Source: Orbicella franksi (Eukaryota). Taken from it: DNA of 64,000 nucleotides. The translations under genes were made by a program, and so were the position numbers. Location of the stretch: NCBI GenBank assembly GCA_964199315.1, contig OZ116711.1, forward strand, positions 21,390,001 to 21,454,000, written 5' to 3'. Shown piece after piece: positions 10,401 to 59,630 of the stretch. Each line of letters begins with the position of its first letter. Within the stretch, counting starts at the first letter, position 1. Below the pieces are notes generated by a model. The model was not told the origin of the DNA and made no database searches. It was given only the letters and a program-made list of their open reading frames with translations.

Positions 10401-10620
10401 TTCCCGCTGTTCCGGTGAGCCTCGATTGCATGCACGATATTTTACGAGCTTGACAGTGTTTATAAAATGCGGCGTGAATAACACATTTCTAGGACTCTAG
10501 CAGGCCACTAGGAAATGCTGCTTGATCACACTGTATTCACAGTAGAATGTAGCATTCTTGATGTTAGCAATATTTGAATTTTTTTCACGAGATCGTCCGT
10601 AAAAGGCTACATATAGTAAA

Positions 10621-35962: not shown

Positions 35963-36178
35963 AAAAAAAAAAATGTTCAAATGTTGTTGTTTATAGTGGT
36001 CAATGCGCTTAGCAACACTTAGCTAGTTCACAGGCATGCCACTTTAAATGAAGGAAACAAATATATCAACTAAACGTAATAGGCTTAAAAATCCCAGCCG
36101 GCGGGAGGCAGATCAGTTGGCTGTTTACAAGCATGACCGAGGAGTTGAACTAGGGTCTACCGAGAAACAACTCCAGCA
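35963..36178 (-). mobile_element. Truncated tRNA-derived SINE (family B) inserted in the LINE RT
   Basis: Splits the RT between RSQVTQI and HVSPKELNPCGVPQG; alignable over ~200 nt to the copy at 40880-41143. Confidence 0.75.
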
Positions 36179-36823: not shown

Positions 36824-37184
36824 AGTCCTGGTCAAACGGACTCGCAAGTAGTCGCAAGTGGCCACAAGTTAAACATGCGTAGAGACTTGCGTTGGGTGGC
36901 CAAACGGACTCGCAAGTCTCCTCGCAAGTACACGCAGGTCGCAATAAAACCCATTTCAAGGCAGACATATCCTGTATTTCATTGGCTAATAATAGGTAAA
37001 TGGACGTCACTCAACTTGTGTTGACTTGGATTGGGTGGCCAAACGGTGAAAAACTTGCGTCGACCTGCGTGCAAATTTGATCTCGACCAAAGTGAGCGCA
37101 AGTCATCGCAAGTCAACGCAAGTGCACGCAAGTAGACGCAAGTTGAGAACTTGCGTCTACTTGCGACTCCGTTTGGCCAGGGCT
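36824..37184. mobile_element. PIF/Harbinger-like MITE with TTA target-site duplication, inside the LINE
   Basis: TIRs AGTCCTGGTCAAACGGACTCGCAAGTAG / CTACTTGCGACTCCGTTTGGCCAGGGCT, flanked by TTA at 36821-36823 and 37185-37187; internal CGCAAG repeats. Confidence 0.85.
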
Positions 37185-38309
37185 TTAAGTCGGAAATTTT
37201 CAAACGCTCTTTTTCGAGAACTGGAGCGATATTATGGAATCAAATTTCTCAAGACTGAAGAGATTTATCTAAACCAATCTTTAAGAAAAAAATTCGTAGA
37301 TTTTTATTTGAGACTCTTTCAGACAGGGATGACTATGTTGAAGTAGTCGACACCCTGACTCAAGTTCTTAAATTTAGTTCCTGATTAATTTCAACCCATA
37401 GTTTAGTTTATCTCTAGTAAATCATAGCTCCTAGTGTCAATCAAAATATGTAAATGTACTTGTATTAAACGGTTTCGTAAATCCTGCTATAAGTAGTTGC
37501 ATAGCAATCTTATTTATGTATTAATGGTCTAATATAAATATAGATGTGGCCCGCCTAGATTAGCCCAGACTACCTGCGGGTTCGCGCTGTTGCTATTGTC
37601 AAGCTTTTTTAACTTAATGAGTATATATTTTTGTAAAATTGTAAATATGCCAGTCATAATAAAGTGTTGTTGTAAGTGTTGTTGTTGTTGTTGTAAATAA
37701 TTCGACCATTGAGTTACATTTACCCGTTGAGGCGAAAGAAAAGCTTGCAATCATATTGTTCGATCAGTGGATTTAGATTTCCTTGCTTTAATGCTATTTG
37801 ATATGACCGTTGATGACACGTTGCGTGACGGCTCCAGTTTCGGTAAACTCGCAAATTCATGCTATTAAAACGTCTCATTTTCACTTTTACTGGTAATGTT
37901 TAAGCACAGAGGCTAATTTTTAAAAAGAAAACTTGTGGAAATACATCTACTAAGGGTTTCCTGGGTCTCTTAAACCAAGTTCTGGCATTTGTTACGTTCT
38001 TTTCTTAACTCAAGAAAAAAATTTGGGGGCTCTATTGTTGGAAAAATAGAATTCTCTTTTAAAAACCTAGACCAACCCCAATTATACCGTTTATTTCAAT
38101 TCGTATTATCAGTATTTCCTTCAAGCTCTGACGCCAACACCCACTTTCACATTGAAACTCCTAGTATAAATTAATTCTCAAAAATACGCGCGAATCTAAA
38201 ACGTCACAACCGTGTTTACCTACTCTCATCTAAACACACATATCGACCAATGAGAGCGCGCGTTGTAACTCAGTGATATTATAAACACCAATATTTTCGT
38301 GTTTTTCAG

Positions 38310-40915
38310 GGCCATGCAAAGGGAAATAGGAAAGCTCTGCTTGTGCAGTCTAAAGTACAGTCATTCCTTGAAATACTCGGCATGTCTAATCACCGGAACA
38401 ATGGAGGCTTTATTTTAAAGCGTTTCGTTGTCCTGATCGTTCTCGCCATTGGACTGATCTGGGCAAAACTCGAACCAAACGTGGAAAATCTTTGGATAGA
38501 AGGTGAGAGATGTCGCCGTTGTTTTTGCACACTGCTTGCCTCTTCTATAATTGTTTGTAAATTAACTGGTCCCTGGTATAACGAGCGCGCTATGATTGGT
38601 TAAAGCTTTGTACCGGTAAACACCCGACTCCGCTAGATTCCCAGTATGGCAGAGTTTGGGAGTAGAACGCGCGAAATGCGAAATGCGAATGCCTTTAATT
38701 TCACCTTTATTGGCTACGCTTCTCACTATCTACTCTGTTGTAGATAGCGAGTAGCCTAGCAGTGTGCGATTGTTAACAAAATGCCGACCCTTTCTTTGCG
38801 TTTTGGAAGTGTCTGTGAAGAGGATTTAGATTAAGTTTTGAACGATAAGTAGATTTACACTAATCAATAAGATTATTCGCTCTCGATTTCTATGCGCGAT
38901 AGTTGACTCGGACTGCGACCTCGTCAACTATAACGCGATAGAAATCTCGAGATCATAATTTAATTGTTTAATGGGATGTGAAATAGGTCATAATACGTCC
39001 TTTCCACCGTCCGGCATCCCCGGCACCCCGGACAACCCCGACATTCCCGGAATCCCCGCCACTTCCGTAAATAAACAAATACGGCTTATCCTGCCAATAA
39101 TAATTTGCATAACGCGCGGAGGCCTTTAACTTGAATAAAACGCTATGCTTTTAAATTGAGGCCCCCTAGCCCTCCACAGTGCGACGGAGGAATTTGAAAA
39201 AAAGGTGTTTTCACTCCAAAAATGTATCAAATGTTTCCCGTCCACACTTCGCCGGAGAAATTTGAAAACGCAAAATTACCGGTGATTTTGGATTTGTGTT
39301 TGAAGAAAACTCTGGTAGGGAAATCACGTAATTATCGTGACGTCATCGTTTTCGAAAAGCTGCGTTTCTAAAATGTTCTTCGTCCGCACAAAAGCGCACA
39401 GCCGACGTTTTTAAATTATTCGGGTGAGAAGAGCTTTTTCGAAAAGCTCAGTTTTCTTGACGGATTAGTGTGGACGGTAGGCCTAACCGTAGAAATAAAG
39501 CTACATTTTCAAAACCCTCCGTCGAAATTTATGTGGACGGCGTCTGAACTGCCGTCTGCTTGTTCTACTTTTTCTAGTCCATCTTGTTTACACACGTTGT
39601 ACGACTTTTATTGATGATAAAGACAATTCAGTAGTTATTGCATTTATATGTAGAACGTTTTAACCTGCCTGTTGTTCGGGATTTTAGCGGATGGACGACT
39701 AAAGAAAGAGCTAGAATATACCAAGAAATCGCTTGGAGAAGGTTACGGCAGCACAAATGAGCTACTGATACAAACACCCAATGAAGAAGGAACAAATATT
39801 CTTACTGTAGAGGCCTTGAAGCGGCACTTGGACATTTTAATGAAAGTCACAAATGTCTCAGTGGATTTGTTTGACCAGTAAGTCAATGTGGTTACGTAAC
39901 ACATATCGAAGTTCGTTGGTCTTTGAGGGTGCGTTCCTTTGGGGTGATCTGGATCAGGTTCAGTGGTCCAAGATCACTCGGATCATGGTGCATCAAAGGA
40001 ACCGACGAATCCACTCTGGTCACGGATTAAACGGATTCGCGGATTCACGGATTCACGGATCCTACAACAGCAAATACTAATTACGTGCGGATTTATCAAC
40101 CCTGTCAACTTCTTTTTTCGCGACCTGTGTGCAAAACTGTCTTTTCTTTTGAGTGAAGTCTTTCTAAGTTAGTTGCTTTTGTTCAAAATTGACTGCCAAA
40201 ACTATAGGATCTTTAAGTCACTGATGGTTTGCTGCTTAATCCGAGCCGCTGCTAGAAGGGGCATTCGAACATGCTCGCCGGTAATTGAACATGTTTCCTA
40301 GAAGATTTCAAAATAAAACATCAGTTATTTGCAAGCACAAGATTTTTTCTTTTTTTTTTTTTAATTTAGAACCTGGAAACTGACGGATATTTGCTACACC
40401 CTGGTTCCAACTTTTAACAATCCCGTAAGTTCTACGCTTTTAATTTCTTTGCTTGTGTTCTTTTTCAGGATAACTTAAATTCGTCGTGAATTTTGCATGA
40501 ACTAAATTCTGTGCAAAAAACGAAGTTTAGAACATGTGGAAAAACCTGTGAAAAAAAATGCCTTTTTTGGCACAGTTTGCTTGGTATTTTGAATTGTATT
40601 TTGGCCGCTTACAAAATTACCTCTAAATTGAAGGAAACCCAAATATAGTAGTTTACTAGGGTAGAAAAACACCATAGAGATAATAATAGACCACAAAGGA
40701 ACAAGGATGGTTAAGGATGAAGAAGATTAACACGGATTACAAACGATGAGCTTGAAAAACTTAAGCTAAACCTGTCAAGATGCGGAAACAAGTTTAACAT
40801 TTCAGATGTAAAATGTAACAAAAAAAAATGTAAATCTTATTTATAGCGGTCATGCACTTGGCCATACAAGTACTAAGCATGTAAAATGTGAAAAAAAAAA
40901 AATGCAAATCTTATT

Positions 40916-40977
<62 letters not shown>

Positions 40978-43900
40978 GAAACAGAGGAAACAAATATTTC
41001 AAATAAACGTAACGTAGTTAAAAATCCCAACCGGCAGGAGGCAGACCAGTTGGCTATTTAAAAAGCGTGACCGAGGATTTGAACTCGGGACAACCGAGAA
41101 ACAAATCCCGCTAGTGGCAGAACCATTCGGCCACGCTGCCTCCGCAGATTAAGAGACATATATCTCTTAATCGTTTTGCCAAAATACACAGCAACACGAC
41201 ACACTGAAATATCTAATATCTTTTTCGCAACCATGTTAGAATCTTGGTCGATTAATGCCATGTGTTATCATAAGTGCTTTGGATTGCTTTTGGGAAGGAG
41301 CGAAGCCACTCGAACCGCAAGTCCAGCCCGTTCTGTAAGTGACAAGTTATAATATGCGACATAAATGTGACAAGACTTGTTAGGTAGGAACATGTCTAGG
41401 AAAAGTCTATCCAGGAAAGTTGAATCTCTTTCCACAAACTTGATATGTGGTAAGCACAAATAATATCAAACGTTGTTAATACGGACGCTAACATTAAAGG
41501 AGAAGAGGCGAGTGTCCGCAAGAAGGTGACCCAAGTGGGTGAGAAGGAACTGTACCTTGTTTGCTCGGGATTACCTGCTCTTTTCCACTAGGAAATTTTG
41601 TTTCTTGCAACCATACAATAAATCCCTTATTGACCAAGGCTCTCCGGTCAAGATGACGGGATATCGGCTTCGTTGTTTTTACCTTTTTGTGGACATGCAT
41701 TAGCTCTCGGTCCGTAAACACCGACGCAAAAAAAAAATTCCATTTCCAGTCGCTTTTGATCAATTAGACAATACCCCTTACATAATTTTCATTATTAAAT
41801 AACAGAAATGGGACCTTACCCTTACAAAATGTAGGTCAGTAGATGATTGTCTATAGTCTATACTTACACCTCAGTTGTTTCAAGTCACTGCATATTTATT
41901 AAATTAAACTTCATGTGCGAACAGCCACGTTTCTAGTGTTTACAGATGTGTAATATTTCATAGACCGAGTGGTACTCCTCTACCGAAGTGGAAAAACCTA
42001 ACCATCCCGTCACTGATACAAGCAGTGCGCACTGAGATTCCTCAGGACTACGAGAAGTTTATGTGGCTGCTTAAAGAGGTATTGTTATTGTACATTAGGG
42101 GTTCATGTAAAACACGATGGGAATGGGAACTTCTCAAACTCATTAAGTTTAAACGAAGGAAATCATGACCGTGACGGTGTTTGGATATCTGATCTTAATA
42201 AGCATAGATTTTAACGATTTTATTCCTCCGTTTTCTCCTTAGTTTTAGTCTCGTTCGAGAAGATATATCAAACACTCAAGACAGTGTTTGACCACATTTC
42301 CAAAGGCCTCAAAGTTCGTCAAAAATACTCCGCAACGCGTCGTATTTTCAACTCTCTTCTCGGTGTTTGGAGATGTGGTCAAACACGGTCTTTCGTGTTT
42401 GATATATTACTTAACAAGATGTTAAGACGATGTAAGATGTTTGGTTAGTTCATTTATGACTGTGATTTCTGACTTTACTAAGTGTCTTCTTTTTACCTTT
42501 CTACTGATTTAAAGGCTGGAATCAACAGCGGCTATATGACGAAACCTTGTCTTGATCCACATGATTCAGAATGTCCAAAAACCGCACCAAATTACAAGAC
42601 CAAGAAGGTAATTATTGGAGTTTTGTTTGAAGCCATTTGCTGTCAAACATGCATTATGTTTGAAGTGTGTATCATGTAAACAATCAATCTTGAGAGAAAA
42701 TGATGAAAGTGCAGAAAAAAAGAGATTGCTTGAAAATGTTCTCAAATCGGTTTGAATTGGGACATCTGCCATGAGAAAACCCAATCTTTGAATCGTGCGC
42801 ATTGGCAAACTGGATAGACAGAAACCCTTTCAGTGTCGTTTTGATAGAAGAACCAGTCGCGTCTTACCTAAGATGTGGTCTGCAGTACATTAACCTCTTC
42901 CTGGTGTAATTTACATTTTGCCAGAAACCAGACATAGGTGTGGAATTGACTGGTGGCTGCCAGGGGTTTGCTACCAAATATATGGACTGGCCTGAAGAGC
43001 TTATTGTGGGAAGAACTGTCAAGAACGGAAGCAGAATTATTAGGTGGGTTTTGTTTCTGGATAACGTGATGTTTACGCGTACGTCGGTTAAGGAGAACCA
43101 CGTGGGCAACGGCAACGAGAACGTCACCAACCAAAAGGTTTAACAATGACCATGCACGTGCATTATAAATCTTTGTACGTTTCGTAGTCGTCCTCTGAAA
43201 AACAACAACGTGGAAGGGCCAAGTTCTGCGTATTTTGGAGAACGTGATCCACAACGGCTAATTTTTCGTATTTCCTTTTGGAATCAGGAGTTGGAATTTA
43301 TCCCGAGAATTTCGTATTTAGCTTGGCAGGTTTTTACACCGATCAGCCTGCTAAACAGGATTTAGATAATTTCGAAATTTAACCAGGTTTTGCTTTTGCG
43401 TTGTATTTCCTTTAATGTATCTTGTCTAGGGCTGAAGCATATCAGAGCATTGTAATGTTGATGGGAAGTCAACAGCTTTATACTCGCTGGCATGGAGAGA
43501 CAAAAGTGAACCACATGAGCGACGGGGATCCAGCGTGGACGAATGATACAGCGTCGCAAGTATTAGAAGCGTGGAAGAGTGAGTTCACCAAGGTAAGTAG
43601 AGATACAAAAACTGTCAGCTGCAAATATTTTAAAAGATGCGGAGGCTTGATCGTTTGTAGGCAAGATTGCAGCAGTCCAGGTGCAAGCCCTGAACGGGAT
43701 GTATGTGTGGTTCTTTTGGAACACTTCACTCTCACAGTACTTCTCGTCACCCAGTTGCATAGATGGGTAATAGCGAATTTAATGCTGGGGGTAACCCTGT
43801 GATGGATTAGTATCCCATCTAGGGGGAAGTAGAAATACTTCTGGTCTTTTTCATGTTATGTCCTGAACTAGTATTAGCTCTGGCTGTAAAGGACCCTTCG

Positions 43901-46900
43901 ATCGATGCGTAATTCTCAAACTCTTTAATACCTCATCAAGTCAGTCATGGCCGGATGGTGTTTGGAGATCTAATCTTAATTAGCATAGAATAGATTTTGA
44001 CGATTTTATTTCTCCGTTTTCTCCTTAGTTTTAGTTTCGATTGAGAAGATATATCAAACACTCGAGACAGTGTTTGACCACATTTCCAAACACCTCGAAG
44101 TTCGTCAAAAGTACTTCACTGAGCGTCGTATTTTCAACTCTCTTCTCGTTGTTTGGACATGTGGTCAAACACGGTCTTTCGTGTTTGATATGTTACGTAA
44201 AAGATAGTGAATTCGATGCATACTTAACTTACAGACTGTTTTGGATTGTGTTGCTTTGTTCTATGATTTTCATCTTAAAGGTCATCAACTCAGCTGACCA
44301 AAGTCAGGAAGATTCAACAGTATTGGCTTTCTCCTCCACATCGTTGAATGGTTTACTGAAGGACTTTTCTCAAATAAGCTATCTCTACGTAGGGATTGCA
44401 TATGTGCTAATGGTAAGATAATGACATAAAAGATTGACGACAGCCATGAACCTATTTATTCATTCTATACTGCAGTTTTGGCTCTCGCTTACCCTCATTT
44501 GGTAAAACTTCTCTTCCACACAAACAGAAAGGGTGTAATCTTTATGTTAAGCAAAAGCGAGTGTGAAGAGATTAGATCTATATTACATGTATATGCATAC
44601 AGGATTAAAAAATAAAAAGTATAAGCGGTATTAAACTTCGCCCTTGAGCGAAATCGTGCTTCGACTGAATTGTCAATTACAACCTTGCAAGCGCTATTTC
44701 GTCCAATTCTTTCAGATCGCGAAACCTCGAATGCCCCCCTTGAAGTCTTTTTGGGAATTCAGTATTTTATTAGTAACGAATAGCTTAGCCAATCAAATTG
44801 CAACATTAACTATAAGAACACAAGCAAAATTTTACTATTACACCATGACTTGTCGTTTGCTTTGTAGCTCCTCTACGCATGTGTTACCCATGGTGCTCTT
44901 GGGTTTGGTGGTGTCGTTCTTGTCACTGTTGCAGTTGTTTCGGGCCTGGGATGTTGTTCGATTTTCCAGATCAAATTTAGTGACGCATCAAAGCAGGTGA
45001 GTCAGCTATTGCAGGCGGACATAAGGATTTACAAGCCTTTTCAATTTAAAAATGTTTTGTATTAAACTTTATGTAGCGAAGTTGATTGTTGCATTCTGTG
45101 TTTCTTTTTTGCGGTTTCTGGAATGGCATTGCCAGTTATATCATGTATTTCCGCGGTAGAAAGCTCGCCGAGTCTGTTGTTTTCAGCCTTTTTTCTAACG
45201 GAACTTTCGCTTCCCGGCTAGAACATTTCAGCTAAGCAACACTTAATGCAGCCATATTCTATATAAGGTCAAACACAGGTATAATGGTGGGAGGCGCGGT
45301 GGCCTCATGGTTAGTGCGCTCGTCTCCGGATCAAGTGGTCCGGGTTCGAGCTCTGGCCGGAGACATTGTGTTGTGTTCCTGGCCAAGACACTTTACTCTC
45401 ACCGTGTCTCTCTCTACCCAGGTGTATAAATGGGTATCGGCGGACTTAATGCTGGTGGTAACCCTGTGATGGACTAGAATCCCATCCAGGGGGAGTAGAA
45501 ATACTCCTAGTCGCTTCATGCTGCAGAAACTGGGATAGGCTCCGGCCTGGTGGGCCACTTGGCCCGTATGCAGACTTAACCTTACCTTTTATATGTGTAA
45601 TGTCTGATAACCGAGGTTCAGTAAACCTATCAAAAAACTAGAAATGCATTATCCGAGTTTAAAAATGTAACAGTAAGAGTACTTTCAAGTTGTTAAAAAA
45701 CTTGTGTGCTATTCAGGCTAAAAGGAGAGCTGTTCAGGTTAAAGTATTCGCCACTATTCGTGGCTAATTCGCCACTATTTACTGTTCACTATTCGGGTTT
45801 TCCAGACTCCCAAAAAAGGGAGCATAAGCAAACCACGACGGCGACGACAACGAGAACGTTGCAAAACAAAAGAGTTAGTGAGCACAACAATGGCTGTGCA
45901 CGTGCGTTAGAAATTTTTCTGCATTTTGTAACCGTCCTCTGCAAAACAACAACGTGAAATGACTAAGTTCTGCGTATTTTGTGGAAAATGACGACGACGG
46001 CTAAGTTTTCGTATTTCCCTTTCGAATTAAACTCTGTAACTGCATTTCTTGGCGTCGTCCTCGGCGTCGCCGTCGTCGTTGATTAAGCTCCCGAATTGAC
46101 ATTGCGTATACTACGCATTGCCAAATACGATACTTAAGTGTGTTCAACAGACTGAACACGCGTTGCACTGTTTTTCTTCTCGTAGATCTTGCCGTTTATT
46201 GCTCTGAGTTTGGGTGTCAATGATATCTTCCTACTATCTCACACTTATTCATCTGCTAAAGATAATGACCAGGTACGTAATCAGTAACGATGGCCAGAGC
46301 TTCTCTGTTGACGCGGAGGGTGTCCAGACCCCTTTGCGTGGTGTGGTTTGTGAACGCGAGGGGAGTTTGTAGTTTATTACACTGGATTTTGGGTTCGATA
46401 TCTGACTGATAAATTTGAGAGTTCTCTCTTTACCTCTCAAAAATAAGGACGTCTGGCGGAAAACGTCAGGTTTCTTACCTACTTTAAAATAGCTATTTCT
46501 CAGCAAAAACACTACGAGTAATCGGATTCTTCAGCTCGATCCACGAAATCTCGCAAGAGTTTGCTCAACTTTTCCTGATCTTAGCTCCTAAAGTAGTTTA
46601 TCACAGGGTCTGCTTCTCATAGTTATGTGCCTTGAGTCTCATAAATTTACGTAACCTCTAATGTAAACCTTCTTCTCCAAAAAAAATACAAACCTAGAAA
46701 TGTTTGAGAAAAAAGACTGCCACAGCAGTATTTTCGTATTCTAACCCGATAATTTATTAATGCTGGTCGGCTTTGGTTTTTTTTTTTTATTTTAGGATCC
46801 TGCAGTGTACCTCCTTGCTAGTACTGGAGTCAGCGTGTTCTTGACATCCTTCAATAACATGTTTGCATTCTTTATGGTAGCACCCATACCCATACCAGCC

Positions 46901-49900
46901 TTGAGGTCGCTTTCTTTACAGGTTTGTGTAGATTAAAGAAACAAATATGAAAAGCAATCATGATCTCACAGCTGACGTTACCAACCAGTATAGTTTGTTT
47001 ATAAAAGCTGTGACAAGGCAAATTTGCTCAGGGTTTTTTCTGGGGCATGCTTTAGCTAGCTGTCACGTTGTTTTTGACAGACTCACTATGCACCCGAGAC
47101 TAGTTCAGCAAATACAGTTGTCTTTGCAACAAAATGGAAATTTAGTGACATACAAAAGAAGATTGGCTAAGAAAATAATAGAACCAACAACAGAAACAAT
47201 AAACCGGGCTCTTAGGTAGCGTTCCCACTACGACAGAGAAATTTGAAAACGCCGTTGTATTTCTACGGTTAGGCGTACTGTCTACACTAATCCGTCACGA
47301 GAACGGAGCTTTTCGAAAATGCTCTTCAAGCCCCAGGAATTTGAAAACGCCGGCTTTTCGCTTTCGTGTGGCACGGAAAACATTTTGAAAACGGAGCATT
47401 CCGAAAATGGCGTCACGATAATCGGGGTTTCCTCGACCGAGTTTACCTCAGACACAAATCCTAAAAGACCGGTGATTGTTGCGTTTTTAAATTCCTCCGG
47501 CGTAGTGTGGACGGAAAGCATTTGATGCGTTTTCAGAGTAAAACCTCCGATTTTAAACTCCTCCGGTGTAGTGTGGACGAGGCCTTAAAACAAAAGAAGT
47601 AGGTACATACACTGAGAGAGCGAATGAAATTGTAGGTTTTGAAGAGGTGCGCGGCTTCTGAATACAGTAACATTGTATGACAGTAACATTGTATGACAAT
47701 TGATTTTCTCTCAATCTTTTTCTTTCTCTTTAGCTTGCTATTGTGGTTGTGTTCAACTGTCTTGCCGTAATTGTGATCTTCCCTTCAATGATTGCGATCG
47801 ACAAAAACAGAAGAAGTCGCGGCTATGACCTGCTTTGCTGTTGCAAAAGGTACAACTTGTGGGTTCACTTAAACTCGAGTGATTTAACCGGCAATCATGC
47901 TCTCCCATCCAAAATAGCCACCAAACGATGTTGCCTCCTTTGAACAACTTTCCGTGGAAGAAAAAGGTGACAGAGATTTCTCAGAGGCGGCAATTTGTTC
48001 TCAATTACTATTGATGCGTGTTCCGATAATTTGGATGGCTCTGTATTCTTGCGGGAGTGGTGAAACTGTTATATAACGTAATTATGTAATATGTTTTATA
48101 TAATAACCCAAGTTATTCTTGCATTTTGATTGGTTCTCGCCTATGATCTATTAGAGGACAGACGCACGATTGACGTCATCATTTCAAAGTTTTTCCCTCT
48201 GTGTTTTAAAATGGCGGAAAGTTTTGAGAATTTAGATAATATTTTACACGACTGGGCAAAAGATAAGGTACAAGAAGGTCTTGTCCAGGCATTAAACAAG
48301 TACTAGAAGCATAGTCTAGCAGGAAGAAGAAAGATAAAGCCGTTTCTGTTTTATAAAATGACTCGGAAAAAATACTCGAGCAGTTTCAGTCGGCAGTCGA
48401 GCGAGACTAAACCAAACACAAAATTGGTCTCTTGGTGGGCCGAGAACCATTGCTTTGTCTCGACCCAGTAAACAAAATGTTTATGAGATTCATTTATTTA
48501 AAACAGTGAGCTTTTCTCAGTCTCAAAATAACTGTTGACACAGTGATTGTCTGGAATGAAACATCAAAACCACTTCAGTGAAAATAAACACATAACCTTG
48601 CTTTCCGATGCGAATGTTCCGGTCCGTTTCAGGATACAGCAGCGAGCAAAGTATAGCTCACTACAGCTCACGGCCAACTGTATCGCAGCTAAAAGGTGTC
48701 TCCGACACTATTTCACACTAATTTGAGAATCACCAACCACAGAGGACACAAATTTCCACCATCACTAACGTTCCTTTCATTCAAAACTCGAATCGAATGG
48801 CCTCCAGATTGACCACAACCGCAAGTTTTCCGAGCGTAGTTTTTCAACTCCTGCAATATTCGAAGCAACATCCAAGCTTTTCGACTCACAGGGCTGCTCT
48901 GATGACAAAACCTGACTTGACTTATCCATGATTTTCTTTAAGATTTGTAGATTTCGCAGTTCAATTCTGCTTTCGCTGTAAGTTTTCATTCCACGAGAAG
49001 CGACGCTCGAGTCAAGTTTGACAGTGGCGTGATTTTCCTGGACCAATCAAAATTCTTTGCTACGCATAGCAACCAATGAGATTGCTTCAATTTGTATAGA
49101 CAATAGATTACGTCAAATGGCTTTTTCGTGTTCGCCAAAGTGGGCAGAGGCCGGCTTTTTGTTCTTACCACATTTTGACGTCATCTGTGATCTATTACTG
49201 AACAGACGCACGGCAACATGGAATCTATTTGTTAATATAATATGTTGAATAATATTCTCATATTTTGATTGGTTCTTACTTATGATCAACTGGAGGACAG
49301 ACGCATAGATTACGTCATAACAATTTATCCCTTTATTATATAATACAAATAGATTTCATGTTGCCGTGCGTCTGTTAAGAAATTGATCACAGAAGTCGTC
49401 AAGATGTGGTAGGAACATTGATGACACACTCGGCTATCGCCCCATGTGCCACTTTTTTGTTCTTATTACCACAATTTGACGTCTTCTGTGATCACTTACT
49501 GAACAAACGCACAGCAACATGGAATCTATTTGTTAGTATTTCTCCTTTCTTTTTCTTTTTCCTGCTACAGAAACACAAGAATTGAATCTCTAGACCCGAG
49601 AAGTTCAAGAACATCAGAAAGTGATAGTAGTTTCCTACAGGTGAAGAATCGGTACCGACCTAGTCCTCCATCGGAACATAATTCCAGTGACTCTGTCATA
49701 ATCCCGGGAAATGTCGAGGCAACTGCTTTAAAGACAGTACATTCCTCGAGTGTGGTAACATTTGAGGTATCTGCAGCGTCCGAGTGGAGCCTTCACAAGG
49801 CACCTCGTTCCAGGAGAGACAGGCAAATTGAAGATCCAAGTGACCTTGAATTACCAGCTGTGGGTAGTATTCCCAACAGTGGTGGAGTAGACACTTCCAA

Positions 49901-52900
49901 AAGCGGGGCGGGCGCTTTAGCAAATGTTACGGAAACTCAGACAGAAATAGAACAAGGCAGGCGAGATCCTGGCAACACAAGACTTTGTTATCAAAGCCAA
50001 AGGACTACAAGGTCTTCAAAAATTTACCCCGAACAAAGTGCGAGTGGAAATAATTTTTGTAAACAATCAGAAGCTTGGACTGAGGGAAGACATAACAGTC
50101 ATGGCTGCACGAGTCGTCCAGCCACTGCCGTAGGTTCATCATCCCGAGATGACAGAGACGCGCGGACCCAGCAGTCCACTGATGCGCCAAAGAAGGTTAC
50201 GTTTACGTTACTGGCTAAACCTGCTTCAGCAGGAAAAACTGCTGTGGTTATGGATGATGCTTCTTCCTTGAGAACATTAAGTTCACACTCGAGATCGTCG
50301 CCAGGCGTGGAGTCAATGAGCAGGGTTTCTACATCACAAAGCATGCAAGAGTGTGACTCAGAGTCTGAATGCTGGTGCAGTTTTCTTAAGACAAAGCTTC
50401 AATGGCTCTCACTGGCATACTTTGCAAGACGTTACTATGGTGTGTGGTTGCAAAAAATGCCTGTCAAGGTAAACCAGGTCTACCCTTATTCGTAACAGGA
50501 ATTTGAAGTAACCACGACAGTGACCCACCTCGCCGATCCTCGATTTTACCTACGAATCTCACGATACTCTTAAGTCATTTAGCTTGTTTCTCTTTGTCAA
50601 AGTTATCTCGAAACTGAATATAGAGCTGAGGACAGTAGCGTTCAATTGAGAAAATGAAATTTCAAAGATTAGCCGTCGTGGTTCACGTTCTCCAGAGAAC
50701 GCAGAACTTTGTCATTTCACGTTGTTGTTTTGCAGAGGACGGCAAAGAAATGTACCAAGAAATATAACGCAAGTGCACAACCATTTTCCTTAGAATCGTT
50801 AACATGACGAGCAATAACAAAGAACATATTTCTCTTTTCCAGGTTGTTGTGATAATATTTTTCCTCAGTCTCCTCGCCGTTGGAATTTACGGCGCACTCC
50901 AAGTTGAAAGTGGCCTAGACCTCACAGATGTTGTACCAAGAAAAGGCGTGGAATACAAATTTGTCGAGGCTAGGCTCAAATATTTTTCGTTTTATCCAGT
51001 GGCGCTCGTTACACAAGACTTCGACTACGCTAATCAGCAGAAGAAATTGTTGTCCTACTATAATGAGTTTAAAAACGTAAGTGGTTAGAAATGTTATGGC
51101 CAGAGAAATTTAAAAACGGCGTTTTCATTCTGAAAACGCATCAAATGTTTTCCGTCCACACTACGCCGGAGAAATTTGAAAACGCAACTATCACGGGTCA
51201 TTTTGGATTTCTGTTTGAGGAAAACTCAGACGGCCGGGGAAATCACATGATGTCATCGTTTTCGAAAAGCTCCGGTTTCAAAATGTTCTCAGTCCACACT
51301 AAAAACGCTGGCGTTCTCAGATTCCTCCGGATTGAAGAGCGTTTTCGAAAAGCTCTGTTTTCGTGACGGATTAGTGTGCTCCCTTTTCAAATTTCGTAGT
51401 GTGGACTGGGCCGCACTGTTGTATAGAGTAGGTAGGGTATTGTCGAAAGAAGCAACAAGTTTTTCTTTTCCGTTTCTTGTCACCAGATTTTCAATACAAC
51501 TGGAATTCCAGGCTCAAAAGAAAGTCCCAAGTTTTGGTTGACGTCCTTTAGAGAATGGCTAAATGGTAAGGGATGTAAAATGAACTAGAAACAGTTGACA
51601 CTACAGTTGCCCCGCTGTGAAGAACAGGTCTGATAAGCCTCAGAAATGTAATTTTCGCTGATAATGACCATAATATTAATCTGGCAATCAGGTTAGCTGA
51701 ACATCTTTGACGACTGTGTACTGTGGATTTCTTTTGTGCTTCCAACTGACTTGTCATGTAAGCTAAGTCTGCATACAAGCCAAGTGGCCCATCATACCAG
51801 CGCTTATCCCGGCTTCTGTAGCATGAAGCGACTAGGACTATTTCTGCTTCCCCCTGGATCGAATGTTAGTCCATCGCAAGGTTACCGCCAGCATTAAATT
51901 GGCCCTTACCCATTTATATACCTGGGTGGAGAGAGGCATTGTGAGAGTTAAGTGTCTTGCCCAAGAACACATCGCTACGTTCCCGACCAGGGGTCGAACC
52001 CGGACCGCTTGATCCGGAAGCGAGCGCACTAACCATCAGCTAAAATTTGGTTCGTCATACGCTGTGTCTATTTGTTCGTTTTTGTTAGGGAGATTTTGCT
52101 TTCGCGTGGCCGAAAGTCCTTAATTTTATGCGTTCATTTCTGTTCGAGAGCGTTTCGCGAGTGTATGCATGATTTCGAAACTATTATACAGTGGATTTTG
52201 TGCCCTTTCCTTTTATGTATACTGGTTGTTGAGTTAAAGTTCAGTGCTGCTCCGGGACGACACTAGACATCAAATTACGTTTGTTGTGCGTTTTTTATTT
52301 GTCTCAATAGAGATGGGTAGCTTGTTCAAACCAAGGGGAAAAGCGCTGATCGTTCCCAAATGTTTACATTCGCTTACTCCTTTATTCTGCTTAGTACACA
52401 AAAGAATAACTAGCCAGTGATTCCGGGAATTTCTAGTCCGTGGGGGGCTCCGGTATGAAAAGGACGGGGTGGGGGGCTCGTCGGAAATTTTGAAAAGAAC
52501 CCCTCCGAGTTACCTAAATCCTGTCTTGTGGTGTGGTTGAAATGTTTTTCACCTCTAAGAGTACCAATTCTAAAACAACACATAACCTCCTGTCATACGT
52601 TTTTCGGCTTAACACCCTTGAAGATTCTGCAAAGGCTCCCGCCGTGGGCCTTTTGAGGCTGAACACGCTGAGAGGTATCAGAACTGCTTTTTTAATCCCT
52701 GAAAGGCACGCCGAGAACCCCCGTCCTCTTTATAAGGGAGTCCCTGCACCTCCCCTCCCCCCCCCCCCCCGCTCGGATATCTAGGCTAGGTCATTATCAC
52801 TGGATTATTCCGCGCCCGCTCTGTTCAGACAGCATCAAGATTTTTTAGTAACAATATTTGTTGTCTATGTAGATACTCAAGTATCATTTGATCAGGACTG

Positions 52901-55900
52901 GGCCAATAATTCTATCACATACGCCGGCTGGTACGACAATGCGACGAGCACTGGTGTTATTGCCTACAAATTACTCTCACAGAATGACAACTCAGACAAA
53001 ATTGATAAATCAAAGGTAGGCACCGACGGCTGAATTTTAACCTATGGGTAGGGGGTTTGAGTAACAACATAGTACAAGTAGGAGTTGTCTCCGCCCAACG
53101 GGGACACCCGTATGAAAAGGTCAGTGATGTCTGTCGTCTCGCTTAGGGATATAAATCAAGGATTCTGGTCTTACCTTGGGTGTTCATGACGAAACCCCAC
53201 TACTTTTAGCCGAGATAGGTGTCATTCAGGGTTTAATTCAAATTTTCCGAAGAGCATCCCCGACCGGGAGTTCCCCCGGGGGTGCCCGCCCGACGCGCTG
53301 CACGCACCACCCCGACTCACTCCCTACAGTCCCTCCTCGAGTGTCTGCTACGTAAACTGCAGAATTTTTTCGGCATTCTGAAAGCAACCTCGGCAAATTA
53401 TGACAGGAAACAAGAGAAGATGTAGAGTAAGAGAGTTCATTCCCCATATAGGCATTATTCTTAAGGGAAACCGTCTCAAGTTATTTCTAGATATGGTTTG
53501 TAGTTCTCTCGACGATGTATTGCGTGGATGTTTCGTGGAGGATAAAACTCCACGCGTGTAAAATTCACGTCAAAGGATTGGCTAATTCTAATAGTAATCT
53601 AAAAATAACTTGAGAGGCATCACCTTAGGAATGAGTCCTTTATGGGGGACTAATTCGCTTACTCTTCATGCTCTCTTGCAGGAAACCATTACGAAGTGCG
53701 AAAGAATGATTATGGCCGAGATGGTAATAACTTCAAGGATGGGCAAACTTAAGCCTACACTACGCCGCAGGAATTTTAAAACGCAGCTTTATTTCTACGG
53801 TTAGGCCTACCGTCGATACTAATCCGTCACAAAAACGGAGCTTCTCGTGACAATCTTCAAACCGGAGAAATTTGAAAACGCCGGCCTTGTGTTTTATTGT
53901 GGACAGGAAACATTTTGAAAACACAAATCTAAAATGACCGTTGATTGTTACTTTTTTAATTCCTACGGCGTACTGTGGACGGAAAACATTTGATGCGTTT
54001 TCAGAGTGAAAACTCCGTTTTCAAATTCCTCCAGCGTAGGTGGACGGGGCCTGGAACACTGAGGCGCCTTGCAATGAGTTTGATTGAATGTTTTTCACAA
54101 TGAACTGTAACCTTGGTGATCAATTATGGGTGTATTTGTGCTTTACAGGTTCGAAACTATAAACTTGTCAGCGATGATGGAATTATTCGTCCAGAAATAT
54201 TTTACAAAGCTCTGACAACTTGGACCAATGAAGACTTCTTGGGGTACCAATTCTCACAAGTATGTTATAAAAGCAACGTATTTTAAACACAGTTTTGTCG
54301 TAACACTCGAAGGAAGCGAGCCATCAGTTAGTTGTGTTAAGACCATATCTGTAATCCTGTACTGTGACAAGTTAATACGTGCATTTCGATAACGTAATAT
54401 CCGTGTATTTCTTGCAGGCCGTCATCAAACCAAAGACAGTCAACTGGACAAACATCAAAAACAAACAAAATGACAAGGCAATGAAAGGTAATTTTCCATG
54501 CCAGTTTCTTCGTTTTTTTTTTTTTTTTAATTAACACTGAACTATATGACTTTGTTACCGAACCAGTCTCCTTTCCAGACTTCCTATTTTCGATACCGTG
54601 GCGTCATGACAATCTTCTCTTATTCTCTCCACGCCATAGAGTGTAAACGGTGAGAAAAGTAAAGGATTGTGGGGAATAACTGCATACCAGAAATGAAAGA
54701 GAAACTGTCAGTTAACATTAGTAAAAATTAGCGTGGTTGTAGACACAACGTAGAGCCTGTAAACTGAATTATAGCCAAAGGAACTGAAGTAATCTGAAAA
54801 TGAAACACTTTAAAAGAATATTTTTTAGGCCTTACGCTCGTTCTTTTTCAGTGCCTAGTGCCAAACCAATCACATTTGCGAATATCAACTTTAATGTTAT
54901 TGGCCTTAACGAAACCAAGGATTTTGTGAAACTGATTGAGGTGAGTTCGCGTGCTTTCATGGAATTTGACTAATTTAAAAGAATCAAGCAATCCAATAAC
55001 GAAGCGCGCGAAGTCTAAAAAGAGAATGCAAATTAAACGCGGGAGCCCCGCGAGAGCCAGACAACATAAGCGTGTTCTGAGAGAAATATGGGAAAATGAA
55101 CGCAAAATTTTCGTTTTAAAAATTGTTTTAGGAACACTTGCTTACGCGCTTGAAAAAGCGTCAAATTTTCCATCATTCCGTTTTGTTTGTCTGAGTTTGT
55201 CTGAGTTATGACGTCACTCGCGCGCTTCGCTATTCTGTTTTATTTTCGTGAACGTCAAAAACCGTTTAGTTAATATCGCGCACCAAAGTTTCTTCTTTCT
55301 AAGGGAAGATTCTACGACATTGTAGCACCATGTAATTTAGAACTGTGGATTATTAGGTAAAATTTCTCCACCGCTTTTGAAGCCAACTCGTAATATCTAT
55401 GACTAGTCCATACGGATATGGTTGCGATTATATAGGCATTGAAAATAAAACCGTTTAAGCCAAAAAAGTTTTGTAATTATGTAAGAAAATGAGACAGAAA
55501 TATAATTCGCGGAAGTAAATCACTTTTAAGCGCGAAACCCTCGCACATGGTTTTTGGCAACGCTTCAGTTAAAGGCTGTCAAAGTAATCGATGAATCGAA
55601 TTATACACCCACCTTTGTTGTCTGCCAAATAGTCTTTAATTTGGAAGCACTTGTTCGACTCTAAACGCGAAAGATCAGTCCATCACTTTGGCAGCCATTT
55701 CAAAATTTTTACTCATGAACGACTGTTGTTCAATCATCGCTTTCATCTTCCCAGGCCGTTCGAAAGATCTGTGACAAGTACTCAGACGACGGATTACCCA
55801 ACTACCCTAGTGGTGTGCCCTTCACGTTTTGGGAGCAGTACATCTGGCTGAGAAGGCAAATGTTGATCGCGATTTCTATTTCATTGGCGGTGAGCTTCGT

Positions 55901-58900
55901 TGTCACGGTGATCATTCTGTTCAACATCCGGGCAGCTGCTGTTATTGTTCTTGTCCCGACAATGATCATAGTGGAAGTGTATGGCTTTATGGGTCTCGCT
56001 GGTATAAAAGTCAGTGCTTTTCCCGCAGTTAGAGTTATTTTGTTCGTTGGAGTCGGTATGGAATTCACTGTACACATGTCTATGGTAAGTTGTCTTTATC
56101 TTGTGATAACAATTTTTTCGATCGGATCGTTCAAAATGAGACGTTTATAGGCTTAGGAGAAAACCGAAACTACAACACTTTTTTGTTACAGTTACGCGAT
56201 CTGAGACTGGAACCGAAAACTCTACAGAGATCCGTGGCGACTGGTTGCTGTTGAGCGGGGAAACATCCAACCTGTGCCTAACGCAAGAAAACAAGCAACG
56301 TGTGCTAAGCGCGGGAAAAACATGCAACGCGTCCTAAGCGCCGAAAAACATGCCACGTGTGCTTAGCGCGGGAAAACGTTCCCAGACCAAGCCACGATTA
56401 TTTAGAGCGATTTTCAATTACGTGTCGTAAAACCAAAATCAAACCAAATACTTACCAATTAGATTACTCAGCTAATCTCAAACCGTAATAAAACCAAAAC
56501 CAAAACCAAAGTAATTGCCTGATTACTTTCGACATTCAATTGAAAACTGCTCAAAGCTTTGCGCCTAATTGGTTTAAAGTGCACTTAACCCCAAAAATTT
56601 TTTTTCGCTAAAATAATAAAGCTTATTTTGTGGAGTAATTTGCCGCAAAAATCTTGCGATTTGGTTAAATCCTCGAATTTCTGTGCCCTCTCGAAACCGA
56701 GTTTCGAATGGTTCGCGACCGCGCTTGGGGAATCTGGAGAGAGTTAAAGCTGTGACGTCAAGTCCAGAACGAATCTTCGGCTGTCCCAATCAGGTCTTTT
56801 ACTTTGTCCGAGTGTAGCAGCCTTGGGTTATGTTTTCTTTGCCACTGCTTAGAGAGCTTTGCAAGCATTTGTAGATACATGTAGCAACTAGTCTGTAACG
56901 TCTTTAAGTCAGTCTTTACCCAGTACCATAAAATGACCAAGTCCTTCACTTTGCAGGCATTTTTCCACGCCCTTGGTGACAGAAACCAAAGAATGCAAAA
57001 GGCAATAGAACACGCTTTTGCTCCGATTGTGAATGGTGCTATTTCTTCTTTACTAAGTGTTGTGGTACTAGCAGGATCCCAATTCTATTTTGTATTCAGG
57101 TAAGAGAGGTTACCAAGCCGGATTTTCTCAGTAACATATTTTATAATGACACTTAAAAGATAATTCCAACCGTTGTTGTTTCTTTATGTTGATTGTTTGA
57201 GAAAGACGCAGCAAATGGCTTAATGGCCGGTTAAGTACGTTAGTAGAGAAGTTCTCTTCAGTAAAGACTATGTAAAGAGAATTCCTTGCCATATTAAAGC
57301 GTTTTTAGGGCTATTTCTCTCGCTCACTTTTCGCTTCTCGATTCGAAAGATCTTTGAGCATTGGTATTGACCGACCATACTCTGTACCATTATTTTTGTG
57401 CTGATTCGTTGGGTTACTGTATCCGCTCTCCTGACACTCGTGTAAAATAAATTCCATAACCTTCTGCAAATCCTCAACTCTTCACCTCACAGTGGACCCC
57501 GCCTTAACTCCACCTCGTTATGACAGTCACTTTATTCTGGCCCGAACAAAAGCTCAGTCAGTAATTTGCTTATTTAAAACACTCCTTTAAACACCCGCTA
57601 ATATGACCCGATTTTTGTAGCCCGTTGGTGACCGGATTAACGGTATTCCACTGTATGATATGTAACTTAAGGATCGTCCCTTTAAAGACTTTTTAATGTA
57701 TTTCTTTCGTAGATACTTTTTTATCCTCCATGTGGCGTTGATACTGATCAGCACATTAAATGGCGTGGTGTTTTTACCTGTTGTTCTGTCCTTAGCCGGT
57801 CCAGGGCCAGTGGTAAGTCGTAATAATTAATCATTGAGGGAAACATGTTAAGAAGAACGAATTACTGGCGTGATTTTCCAAAATCAAGACACTGGTCATA
57901 CAGTGCGGTAACCTCTCTTCACCGAAGAGTTTCGAAACGTTCGTTTTAGAAAGCCGCTGTGCGAGGTGAGTGCAGGCACAAAGTTAACCTTGCGCCTGCA
58001 CTCATATCGCTCAGCAGATTCTCCCTATCCGAAAAACCCCTTTGAGCCTCTGCGGAATGGAGAGTGCAAATTGCTGCTAGGTCGTTGCACGAGCCTGAAG
58101 TCTGGAAACTACTTAATTAAATGAAATCAGCAAACGAAATATCAATCATACACTTTAAGTCCAAATCCTTTTCAAGACGTAAAATTCTCCACCTTAAGGG
58201 GGTCTTATACTCTCAGATATAAATTTTTCTCCAAAAAACCATTTTTTTGGAACATGAAGATTCAACATCCCTGTCCATTTGTAAATCGTATTTTGAAACG
58301 ATTTTCCTCTAATTACTCCTGAATTTACGTTTAAATTAAGAAATCTGAACACTTCTAGCTATATTTCAACATAGCAACACCCATAGCAACCATTGTTTAC
58401 AGTCTAAAAGTACTCACAAAATGGATTCAATTCAGTACATTTTAATGATACTTTACACAAACGCTTTAAAAATGTGTAGTTATGAGATTTTTGCATCATG
58501 GTCCTGAACATTGTGTCTTCTACCATCTTATACGCTCCTTATACTTGGTTAACATTTCTATGACTGGTGTGTATTCGGGTGTTCAATGAAACATTTATGT
58601 AAAACCTTTAAATATACCCCTCCCCCTGCCCCTAACCTCCCCCCCCCCTAGTTCACAGGGCTAATTTGGGCTCTCGGAGACCGAAGTAAAACTTTAAAAC
58701 CTTATTTCTCAAAATGACCAAATAGACGGATCATCAATATCTCGCACACGATATCTCCACTGGGTTTTAACCGAATGTTGTCAAATTTTCAACATTGATG
58801 AAGGACACAATTATCTAGGTCTTAAACCTCCAAAATTTGCAATTTATGAAAATTTTCCCTGTTATTTAGTTAATATAGTTAATATTACTTAATATTAGTA

Positions 58901-59630
58901 TACTTTTTCAACATTTCACGAGAAAAACCCCTTCAAAACACTGTTTTCTGAGGTTTGTCTCCTGGACAACTTGCTTATGGACAGGATGAACTTAATTCCA
59001 TACTTCTCGAACCATTCATTAACACGTTATCGTGTTTATAATGAACACCACTTTTTAACACTTAGGAGCTAGTTATTCATTAACTATCGTGGCACGTGAC
59101 CTGGAAAAGCTCATTTTTGAAGTCAGAGTGCAAAGTCCTTTAACGTGATACCAAAACTGTTCCACAGAGTTGTTTTGCAAAAAAAAAAAAATTTTTAGGT
59201 GTAAGACCACCTTAATCCTAACAAGAAATACACTTTGTAATGAATATAAACAATGAAGGTATTTGGTACCACAAACTTACGCATGCCGTCTAAACACAAT
59301 CAAGTTGTGACTTTTATTTGTAATTTTATATTTGTTTTGGTTTGTGTCTATCTTTGCTAGATAACAGAAATCCGTACGCCGGCCATCGTCTCAAATACGC
59401 TCGCTATTCAAAACCCTTCTGCGGTTAGGTATGTTTATAATGAACCGGAACCAGAAGAAATCGAATTGCACGCTGTTAAAGAGGTAAACAATAAGTCAAA
59501 TGATCATGGAGTCGATCTGGAAAGAACCAACGGAAATGGGGCCAAAGTGGAGTTATCCGATAATGAACCGAGGAGCTCAGACATGACGACGGGCGACGAG
59601 CCTCGCCCATGTGTACTGGCTTGGACGTGA
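38310..59630 (+). CDS. PTCH1: Patched paralog C (divergent PTCH1-like), 24 exons in one open frame; first exon/start not located
   Basis: Exons: 38310-38502, 39688-39877, 40370-40424, 41240-41334, 41964-42078, 42515-42607, 42925-43043, 43430-43592, 44281-44412, 44868-44996, 46186-46272, 46796-46921, 47734-47849, 49571-50468, 50843-51076, 51487-51565, 52873-53015, 54149-54259, 54418-54487, 54852-54940, 55755-56084, 56957-57099, 57713-57812, 59361-59630. Total 4080 nt, with no internal stop or frameshift found. The first exon seen (193 nt, [17 protein letters not shown]...) corresponds to PTCH1 exon 2. An in-frame ATG at 38382 is a possible start. Confidence 0.9.
39161..39545 (-). mobile_element. 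MITE family 1 copy (gene C intron)
   Basis: Reverse-orientation copy of 22701-23089. Confidence 0.8.
40880..41143 (-). mobile_element. tRNA-derived SINE (family B)
   Basis: Minus strand reads GGAGGCAGCGTGGCCGAATGG (A box) ... GAGTTCAAATCC (B box), with a T-rich tail; related copy at 35963-36178. Confidence 0.75.
42200..42415 (+). repeat. Dispersed palindromic repeat (TTTGACCACATTTCCAAA family)
   Basis: Near-identical copy at ~43985-44180 and a reverse copy at ~13625-13795. Confidence 0.8.
45289..45590 (+). mobile_element. tRNA-derived SINE (family A), full length
   Basis: tRNA-like head with A box TGGCCTCATGG and B box GGTTCGAGCTC; central CC(T)GGCCAAGACACTT and GTAACCCTGTGATGGACTAG-CATCCCATCCAGGGG blocks; 3' GGGCCACTTGGCCCGTATGCAGACTT. 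Other copies: 51762-52040 (-), ~43700-43890 (+), ~21815-21900 (-), ~63340-63500 (-). Confidence 0.85.
47214..47585 (+). mobile_element. MITE family 1 copy (gene C intron)
   Basis: Near full-length copy ending GTGGACGAGGCCT followed by TAA. Confidence 0.85.
48070..49535. mobile_element. Composite/nested non-autonomous elements ending in a palindrome that abuts a gene C acceptor
   Basis: Repeated block TTTTGATTGGTTCT...TATGATC...GAGGACAGACGCA at ~48125 and ~49263; repeated arm TGTGATC...CTGAACA(G/A)ACGCAC(G/A)GCAACATGGAATCTATTTGTTA at ~49185 and ~49487; palindrome 49345-49533. Confidence 0.7.
51095..51412 (-). mobile_element. MITE family 1 copy, internally deleted (gene C intron)
   Basis: Alignable to 22701-23089 in reverse orientation. 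Confidence 0.8.
51762..52040 (-). mobile_element. tRNA-derived SINE (family A), near full length
   Basis: Reverse complement of the 45289-45590 element. Confidence 0.85.
53748..54052 (+). mobile_element. MITE family 1 copy, internally deleted (gene C intron)
   Basis: Both TIRs are recognisable; central part is shortened. Confidence 0.8.
58198..59211. mobile_element. Non-autonomous Kolobok-like DNA transposon with TTAA target-site duplication (last intron of gene C)
   Basis: TTAA at 58194-58197 and 59212-59215; TIRs GGGGGTCTTATAC / GTGTAAGACCACC. Purine-purine termini fit Kolobok better than piggyBac. No transposase ORF. Confidence 0.75.

Follow-up and report, generated by a model that had tools for sequence, protein, structure and literature searches.

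Three Patched genes, here called A, B and C, lie in tandem on the plus strand within a 64,000-nt window of the Orbicella franksi genome (G000:C14:21390001-21454000, contig OZ116711.1, in a genome of 497 Mb; the window is the whole stretch of DNA that was analysed). Gene C is an old chimera of the other two: its N-terminus through the long cytoplasmic loop comes from A, and everything from the seventh transmembrane helix (TM7) to the C-terminus comes from B. It is Patched proper by descent, yet it fails one of the motifs that define the family, the GxxxDD of TM4, where it reads SLGVND. C is spliced and expressed, and it is under purifying selection. The reading that we favour, tentatively and at somewhat less than an even chance, is that C would be an expressed, maintained but non-transporting Patched, a natural relative of the laboratory mutant NNQ, binding ligand or sterol and tuning the Hedgehog pathway. 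An earlier note on this DNA, made from its letters alone, had proposed a transport-dead Hedgehog decoy, an interpretation that is partly supported by the analysis described below.

The altered motif lies in an exon with an AG acceptor at 46184-85 and a GT donor at 46273-74, which translates to [29 protein letters not shown] and contains [13 protein letters not shown]. The earlier note had read Gly to Ser at 46207-46209 and Asp to Asn at 46219-46221 relative to the GLGVDD of B, and both codons were confirmed. Residues 1-27 of the exon align without gaps to residues 502-528 of PTCH1 (phmmer against PDB chains, human numbering, 6e1h_A), which upholds the assignment of the two changes to G509 and D513. 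The following GAT (Asp, 46222-24) corresponds to D514 and is retained. The TM10 Glu is also present, as the note had stated: C reads GVGMEFTVH, and the Glu at 56061-63 aligns with E1095 when the TM8-10 exon is matched to PTCH1 994-1101. T551 and H520 (PTCH1 numbering) and the sterol-conduit motif NLW at the TM1 neck are likewise kept, and PTCH1 is the best PDB match of every membrane exon of C. Only one TM4-like match was found between 38 and 60 kb, so the introns of C hold no alternative canonical TM4 exon there. The fly allele ptcS2 (D584N) was considered as a case of the same substitution and dropped, since D584 is an Asp of the SCAP-D443 type, located at the TM6 boundary, and differs from the one in GxxxD (PMC3078328); its equivalent is kept in C (IAIDKNRR).

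Such a change is rare within the family. Among 137 Patched homologs with a readable motif, from cnidarians to vertebrates, 128 carry GxxxDD and 135 the first Asp. Those that deviate vary almost all at the second Asp (DH in Drosophila, DN in Caenorhabditis elegans PTC-1 and in Hydra, DA in a copepod). The two without the first Asp are a PTC protein of Steinernema hermaphroditum (P0058, GVNN) and an arthropod-like transcript closest to millipede Patched (P0070, GMSLND). With only 2 of 137 homologs lacking this residue, the TM4 change in C is beyond chance.

The loss is a property of the lineage and not of one genome. Searching a protein collection clustered at 90% with the TM8-10 exon yielded short open reading frames (ORFs) with the hallmarks of C ([20 protein letters not shown]) in other coral assemblies, and orthologs were recovered from three ENA assemblies, referred to here as sp1 (12 exons, 856 codons), sp2 (24 exons, 1363 codons) and sp3 (23 exons, 1296 codons). 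The TM1 exon of sp3 and the TM4 exon of sp1 lie outside the DNA fetched. All three frames are open, with canonical splice sites and without stops or frameshifts, and the C lineage is restricted to a subgroup of stony corals. In the three readable copies the TM4 codons are AGT..AAT GAT (O. franksi, S..ND), GGT..AAT GAC (sp2, G..ND, GLGVND) and AGT..AGT GAT (sp3, S..SD, SLGVSD), whereas A, B and Pocillopora A have GGN..GAT GAY. D514 is thus invariant in these copies, and the G509 position toggles between Gly and Ser. With G..ND in sp2 and S..SD in sp3, the loss of the first Asp dates to the ancestor of the C lineage; the residue became Asn there and later drifted to Ser in sp3. The check in related species that the earlier note had called for therefore upholds the loss of the Asp, replaced by Asn in sp2 and Ser in sp3, as a lineage trait; the change at G509 is not one, with Gly in sp2 and Ser in O. 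franksi and sp3.

Other changes in the membrane core of C are shared by these orthologs. Common to them are a 10-residue deletion between TM2 and TM3, Asp 497, Lys 500, Val 562, Asn 1128 and Ser 1136, the first three being seen in sp2 and sp3 as in O. franksi. In the O. franksi TM2-TM3 exon the in-frame deletion has its junction at 44888/44889, and FNAASTQ has become FSDASKQ, placing Asp at the A497 position (44982-84) and Lys at that of T500 (44991-93). Within TM8-TM10 the O. franksi copy has an Arg at the I1085 position (56031-33) in common with sp1 and sp2, and an Arg at the W1051 position (55929-31) and a TM9 Pro (55956-58) are specific to the O. franksi copy. The E1095 position holds Glu in sp1 and sp3 and Asp in sp2 (GVGMDFTVH). 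The Asn at D1128 was considered as a second lost gate residue and dropped, since an Acropora B-type Patched also has Asn there. In TM10 that Acropora protein (P0002/P0152) reads GVGEEFTVH, which shows variation close to the ion path in B-type proteins too.

Several further observations were made on these orthologs. Sp2 has Lys at the T551 position. Four additional C-type fragments (P0328, P0334, P0061 and P0332) point to more species. In assembly ERZ26858540 two contigs (L021, L022) hold C copies that are 95-100% identical in protein, with a synonymous divergence (dS) of ~0.03-0.06, and are either haplotypes or the outcome of a duplication that is very recent. In sp1 the TM6 exon is preceded by an ORF of 1334 residues that contains a DNA polymerase B domain (PF03175; L023, 4578-8582). 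This ORF is probably an intronic Polinton/Maverick-type element, and it hid the TM4 exon from the DNA fetched.

The chimeric origin of C is evident from exon-by-exon comparison, in which its exons are closer to A-type sequences through the loop exon and closer to B-type sequences from the TM7 exon on. The overall layout agrees, with a long loop as in A, and a short tail and undivided TM8-10 as in B. Gene A has TM8-10 split by an extra intron (3661/3994), as does A of Pocillopora meandrina (L013, 33833/34249), whereas B, C and the C orthologs have one 330-nt exon; this single exon is an independent marker that the 3' half of C is derived from B. In separate trees the 5' part of C is sister to A (88/87) and its 3' half sister to B (96/91). 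The C orthologs have the same layout, with an A-type loop exon followed by a B-type TM7 exon. C groups with A and B and not with the PTR/PTCHD branch, and its close homologs carry the Pfam domains PF02460, PF12349 and PF27572. As TM4 lies in the A-derived 5' part, the TM4 exon of C descends from A, from which it differs at nine of 29 codons. C is not a simple duplicate of B, the gene with which the earlier note had compared it. In P. meandrina (CALNXJ010000024.1) gene A is followed ~3.4 kb downstream by a 1218-residue B-type Patched, which means that the A-B tandem is older than C.

The Ser and Asn codons of C are not sequencing or assembly errors. The evidence on this point, and on expression, consists of assembled contigs and not raw reads, with contigs of four runs aligned to 44200-50199; contig differences are given as found among those listed, with 72 differences of low support standing outside that list. 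An RNA contig of run X8 crosses the TM4 exon at depth 111 with a synonymous A>G at 46233 as its sole listed difference, and DNA contigs of X29 and X34, from two other organism labels, span the exon with no listed difference. The TM4 region of C is present in DNA assemblies under three labels and in coral metagenomes. That the two codons might be artefacts, a concern the earlier note had itself raised, accordingly deserves next to no credence: RNA and DNA assemblies of other samples and organism labels do not contradict them, orthologs in other species also lack the Asp, and no point in favour of an error was found.

The same contigs establish that C is spliced and expressed. Poly-A RNA contig X1 (record 2) is continuous over 47847|49569, giving a GT-AG intron at 47850-49570 between exons 13 and 14, unlike DNA contigs of X29 and X34, which read through the 47849 donor into the intron. 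An alternative placement of this junction at 47858|49601 was rejected, as the RNA contigs give 47849|49571. X1 record 1 begins 52 nt before exon 10 with sequence that is not genomic there, consistent with an exon 9/10 junction. X8 contigs covering introns reach depth 10-16 only, against 111 on the TM4 exon. RNA-seq assemblies from at least six studies, with runs under four organism labels, contain 85-99% of the sampled words of the 868-nt loop exon. The absence of spliced expression, which the earlier note had listed as fatal to its proposal, is excluded by the spliced poly-A contigs.

We next consider whether C could be a decaying duplicate, that is, a young pseudogene whose frame is open by chance. 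Three features could be expected of decay. In the protein tree C has a branch 4-5 times longer than A and B have; unique changes at positions that are otherwise invariant number 26 in C, whereas other coral Patched proteins have 1-4; and the sterol-sensing domain of C carries an in-frame deletion. The ratio of nonsynonymous to synonymous divergence (dN/dS) among the C orthologs is, however, 0.29-0.34 over the whole gene at a dS of 0.31-0.37 (0.28-0.61 by region, unsaturated). By region it is 0.27-0.36 in the first ectodomain (ECD1), 0.16-0.22 in the second (ECD2), 0.14-0.20 in the sterol-sensing bundle TM2-6 (SSD) and 0.19-0.24 in TM8-12, with 0.55-0.68 in the cytoplasmic loop and 0.43-0.53 in the C-tail. 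Values so far below 1, at ~0.2 in the folded domains, rule out a pseudogene, and with it the neutral value near 1 that the earlier note had named as evidence against itself. Four species have open frames and canonical splice sites. Neutrality predicts tens of stops (a rough estimate from ~4% stop-creating substitutions, a stem-plus-tip dS of ~0.35 and 4.1 kb), and none are seen; spliced poly-A RNA exists as well. We regard decay as very improbable. The comparison of ectodomains with the TM core that the note had suggested shows both to be constrained, to about the same degree (~0.2 each). A core held as firmly as the ectodomains is not free-running dead weight.

The present constraint was preceded by a burst of change after the birth of C, which fell mostly on the membrane core. 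All C sequences form a single clade (100/100), whose stem is long, at 0.27-0.38 changes per site, and whose tips are short. Branch-wise dS was too noisy to be used when Pocillopora A or Porites B served as the outgroup (outgroup dS above 1, some estimates negative), and dN splits combined with a dS clock were therefore used. By this rough partition the stem dN/dS of C was ~0.4-0.8 in all folded domains, and the similarly approximate values for the parent lineages are ~0.01 (A, SSD), 0.08 (B, TM8-12) and 0.12 (both ectodomains). These estimates suggest that relaxation was limited to the stem, with constraint restored afterwards. In the SSD, dN is 0.124 on the C branch against 0.004 on the A branch. 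The 26 unique changes were counted at columns invariant in 15 other Patched proteins. The membrane bundles TM2-6 and TM8-12 account for 17 of them, out of 100 pan-animal invariant columns, and the ectodomains for 5, out of 103 (Fisher p = 0.006). Polarised changes on the C and A branches number 28 and 2 in the SSD and 43 and 16 in ECD1 (p = 0.026). All the ectodomain Cys residues common to A and B (6 + 1) are present in C, sp2 and sp3. The earlier note had drawn on 'intact' ectodomains as its ground for Hedgehog binding; such binding is not safe to assume, as C pairs an ECD1 from A with an ECD2 from B and both changed fast right after its birth.

What the loss of the first Asp would mean for the protein can be judged from well-studied relatives. 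In PTCH1, D513, D514 and E1095 form the cation site, and neither D513Y nor D513A/D514A represses Smoothened or lowers accessible cholesterol (PMC8654371; PMC9949057). NNQ (mouse D499N, D500N, E1081Q), correctly cited by the earlier note as inactive, does not suppress Smoothened and still binds ShhN (10.1101/352443). The equivalent Asp to Ala change in C. elegans PTC-3, D697A, yields a dead protein (PMC3078328), and PTCH2 D469A is reported to be dominant negative (preprint 10.1101/2023.08.08.549832). Since the first TM4 Asp is required in every Patched/RND protein tested, C is most likely no transporter by itself, and by analogy with these mutants a loss of stand-alone ion-driven transport appears well supported.

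The sequences show the history of the gene. C formed by fusion of the neighbouring A (N-terminus through loop) and B (TM7 to C-terminus). In the ancestor of its lineage the first TM4 Asp became Asn, the TM2-TM3 loop lost ten residues, and TM11 and the TM3-TM4 junction were remodelled. The product would most likely be unable on its own to run ion-driven sterol transport or repress Smoothened, with selection retaining a folded 12-helix scaffold and its conserved ectodomains. It might then capture Hedgehog, or form mixed oligomers in which it interferes with A or B, and so adjust the pathway without itself passing the signal on. The setting for such a role exists: the Hedgehog pathway is functional in the anemone Nematostella (PMC7515634), and O. 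franksi has Hedgehog N-terminal signal domains above the Pfam cut-off at three places (G000:C5:22027530-22028163, C11:23418727-23420207 and C11:12144109-12145871). A role as Hedgehog decoy is plausible. The more specific claim that a transport-dead Patched made of two fused paralog halves would still bind Hedgehog, and act as a ligand sink or dominant-negative subunit, we consider possible but doubtful.

A number of observations weigh against a non-transporting C. The constraint on its core (dN/dS ~0.2) fits a retained or new membrane activity equally well, and D514, E1095, T551 and H520 are all retained. Two new charged residues, Asp 497 and Lys 500, have been kept within the lineage and might alter the wiring of the ion site. 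The TM4 site tolerates some variation, since Drosophila Patched has a natural His, and C. elegans PTC-1 an Asn, in place of the second Asp, and D513Y has also been described as reduced rather than null (preprint 10.1101/2023.08.08.549832). Hedgehog binding by C may be lost or changed and is not to be assumed, given that ECD1 and ECD2 come from paralogs ~50% identical and were fast on the stem.

Some of these points belong to an alternative in which C is still an active transporter, with its ion path rewired, another form of coupling or another lipid as cargo, and with D514, E1095, Asp 497 and Lys 500 compensating for the missing Asp. Both membrane bundles have dN/dS values of 0.14-0.24, the same as or below the ectodomains, Asp 497 and Lys 500 persist in the C lineage, NLW is kept, and working Patched proteins vary at the second Asp. 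Against this, there is no known case of a working Patched or RND protein that lacks the first Asp of TM4 (D513Y, D513A/D514A, NNQ and PTC-3 D697A all fail), the drift from Asn to Ser in sp3 and the Gly/Ser flips at G509 look unconstrained and not re-engineered, and 17 invariant core positions have changed. We rate continued transport as unlikely.

Alternatively, C may function only as a partner of A or B in mixed oligomers, which would provide the missing gate in trans, while C would contribute ligand-binding or regulatory properties to an active complex instead of opposing it. In heteromers of PTCH1 and PTCH2, cation transport is reported to be available in trans, PTCH1 D513Y and a conduit-dead PTCH2 together restoring activity (preprint 10.1101/2023.08.08.549832). 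A, B and C are adjacent on one strand, and with halves of A and B, C could have kept interfaces to both. Trans-complementation rests, however, on that single preprint and on vertebrate proteins, and the 10-residue loop deletion and the TM11 changes could equally disturb packing; an obligate partner seems to us rather improbable, a shade more so than a working transporter.

The nearest functional analogues of C are laboratory mutants, and its nearest natural ones are the nematode PTR proteins and the two Patched variants without the first Asp. The PTCH1 gate mutants NNQ, D513Y, D513A/D514A and G509V bear closest comparison, as C has the same residue neutralised, the motif Gly is also changed in O. 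franksi, and the behaviour of NNQ, ShhN binding without Smoothened repression, is the one proposed for C. Unlike these alleles, C is a natural, conserved gene that keeps D514 and E1095; NNQ is a triple mutant, whereas C has a single Asp to Asn change at the gate, accompanied by further core changes (the loop deletion, Asp 497, Lys 500, Asn 1128 and Ser 1136). Vertebrate PTCH2 is similar in being a paralog beside the main receptor that may modulate it in heteromers and becomes dominant negative once its gate Asp is mutated. It differs in having an intact GxxxDD and in having arisen by whole-gene duplication and not as a chimera.

C. elegans DAF-6/PTR-7 and other PTR/PTCHD proteins lacking a TM4 GxxxD are natural members of the Patched superfamily that work without this permease motif; DAF-6, which is Patched-related, functions without permease activity (PMC3078328). 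DAF-6/PTR-7 belongs to a distant Patched-related branch in an animal without Hedgehog and Smoothened, whereas C lies inside Patched proper in an animal with Hedgehog genes. The Steinernema PTC protein and P0070 share with C the replacement of the first Asp by Asn in a Patched-like protein, but in unrelated lineages and as independent events. Nematodes lack Smoothened. HHIP, the vertebrate Hedgehog decoy, is a membrane protein that sequesters Hedgehog without signalling and so plays the role proposed for C; the likeness is functional only, and hypothetical for C, since fold and origin are unrelated. In the literature searched, neither coral Patched paralogs nor a natural Patched without its gate was described.

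Models of the three genes were built by spliced alignment to coral Patched proteins obtained from protein searches, and their features are collected in the table. In a whole-genome search with the TM8-10 exon, A, B and C were the only close relatives, the next matches being 23% identical. Gene A (1469 codons counted from the second exon, with a long middle loop and a long C-tail) is orthologous to proteins of ~1480 residues in Pocillopora, Acropora and Montipora. Gene B is a member of a divergent group of coral paralogs, annotated 'patched-like 2' in Stylophora. The open frame that the earlier note ascribed to C was borne out, with GT-AG junctions throughout and the terminal stop as its only one. 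A first coding exon of C is expected further 5', but a comparison with exon 1 of A did not reveal it.

Features of the Patched locus (window positions unless marked G000).
Feature	Position	Strand	Remarks
Gene A, canonical coral Patched, 3' part	1..6531	+	5' exons upstream of window
Gene A TM4 exon	G000:C14:21386921-21387007	+	GLGVDD; upstream of window
Gene B, 'patched-like 2' type	10618..28822	+	24 exons, 1213 codons
Gene B TM4 exon	19228-19326	+	reads [17 protein letters not shown], including LALGLGVDD; canonical GLGVDD
Gene C, chimeric Patched paralog	38289..59630	+	24 coding exons, 1366 codons, stop 59628-30
Gene C exons 1-8 of the 24 found	38289-38502, 39688-39877, 40370-40424, 41240-41334, 41964-42078, 42515-42607, 42925-43043, 43430-43592	+	
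Gene C exons 9-16 of the 24 found	44281-44412, 44868-44996, 46186-46272, 46796-46921, 47734-47849, 49571-50468, 50843-51076, 51487-51565	+	
Gene C exons 17-24 of the 24 found	52873-53015, 54149-54259, 54418-54487, 54852-54940, 55755-56084, 56957-57099, 57713-57812, 59361-59630	+	
Gene C TM2-TM3 exon	44868..44996	+	in-frame 10-codon loop deletion
Gene C TM4 exon	46186..46272	+	87 nt, 29 codons; same length as TM4 exons of gene A and Pocillopora A
Ser codon AGT, PTCH1 G509 position	46207..46209	+	GGT in sp2, AGT in sp3
Asn codon AAT, PTCH1 D513 position (first Asp of GxxxDD)	46219..46221	+	AAT in sp2, AGT in sp3; GAT in A, B and Pocillopora A
Gene C long cytoplasmic-loop exon, A-type, last A-derived	49571..50468	+	in spliced poly-A RNA contigs
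Gene C intron with A/B chimera boundary	50469..50842	+	exon-wise similarity and trees
Gene C TM7 exon, first B-derived	50843..51076	+	18 TM7 residues identical to B
Gene C TM8-TM10 exon	55755..56084	+	single exon as in B
Gene C TM11 exon	56957..57099	+	Asn at D1128 position (57032-34), Ser at G1136 position; common to all C orthologs

The introns of C contain repeats of very high copy number (45200-45600, 45800-46180, 47200-47600 and 48000-49500), over which contig depths add up to 10^4-10^5 in each of the four runs, and one repeat family of these introns recurs at 42215-42445, 44001-44204 and 13558-13698. Retroelement ORFs with a reverse-transcriptase motif (FADD) lie at 35000-37100, between B and C, perhaps within the first intron or promoter region of C. 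Elsewhere, a Montipora foliosa protein (P0151, 1897 aa) has ~650 residues of B-type Patched twice in tandem, reflecting either a partial internal duplication or an artefact of assembly or annotation.

The way in which Patched links ion flow to sterol handling and to the repression of Smoothened remains a matter of debate, and nearly all of the evidence comes from engineered or disease mutants. In C, evolution has made the key gate mutation and kept the gene under selection across species separated by a dS of ~0.3, and the C lineage records the positions that changed along with it (the TM2-3 loop, residues 497 and 500, and TM11). Coral A, B and C form a natural test set for asking whether a gate-less Patched binds ligand, whether it poisons or complements a normal Patched, and whether it transports in some other way, making an open mechanistic question directly testable. 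Should the proposed role for C be correct, it would be the first natural split of ligand capture and Smoothened repression into different genes. C is in addition a clear case of a signalling component newly born by chimerism of tandem paralogs, and it indicates that Hedgehog reception in cnidarians can exceed in complexity the single receptor studied in Nematostella.

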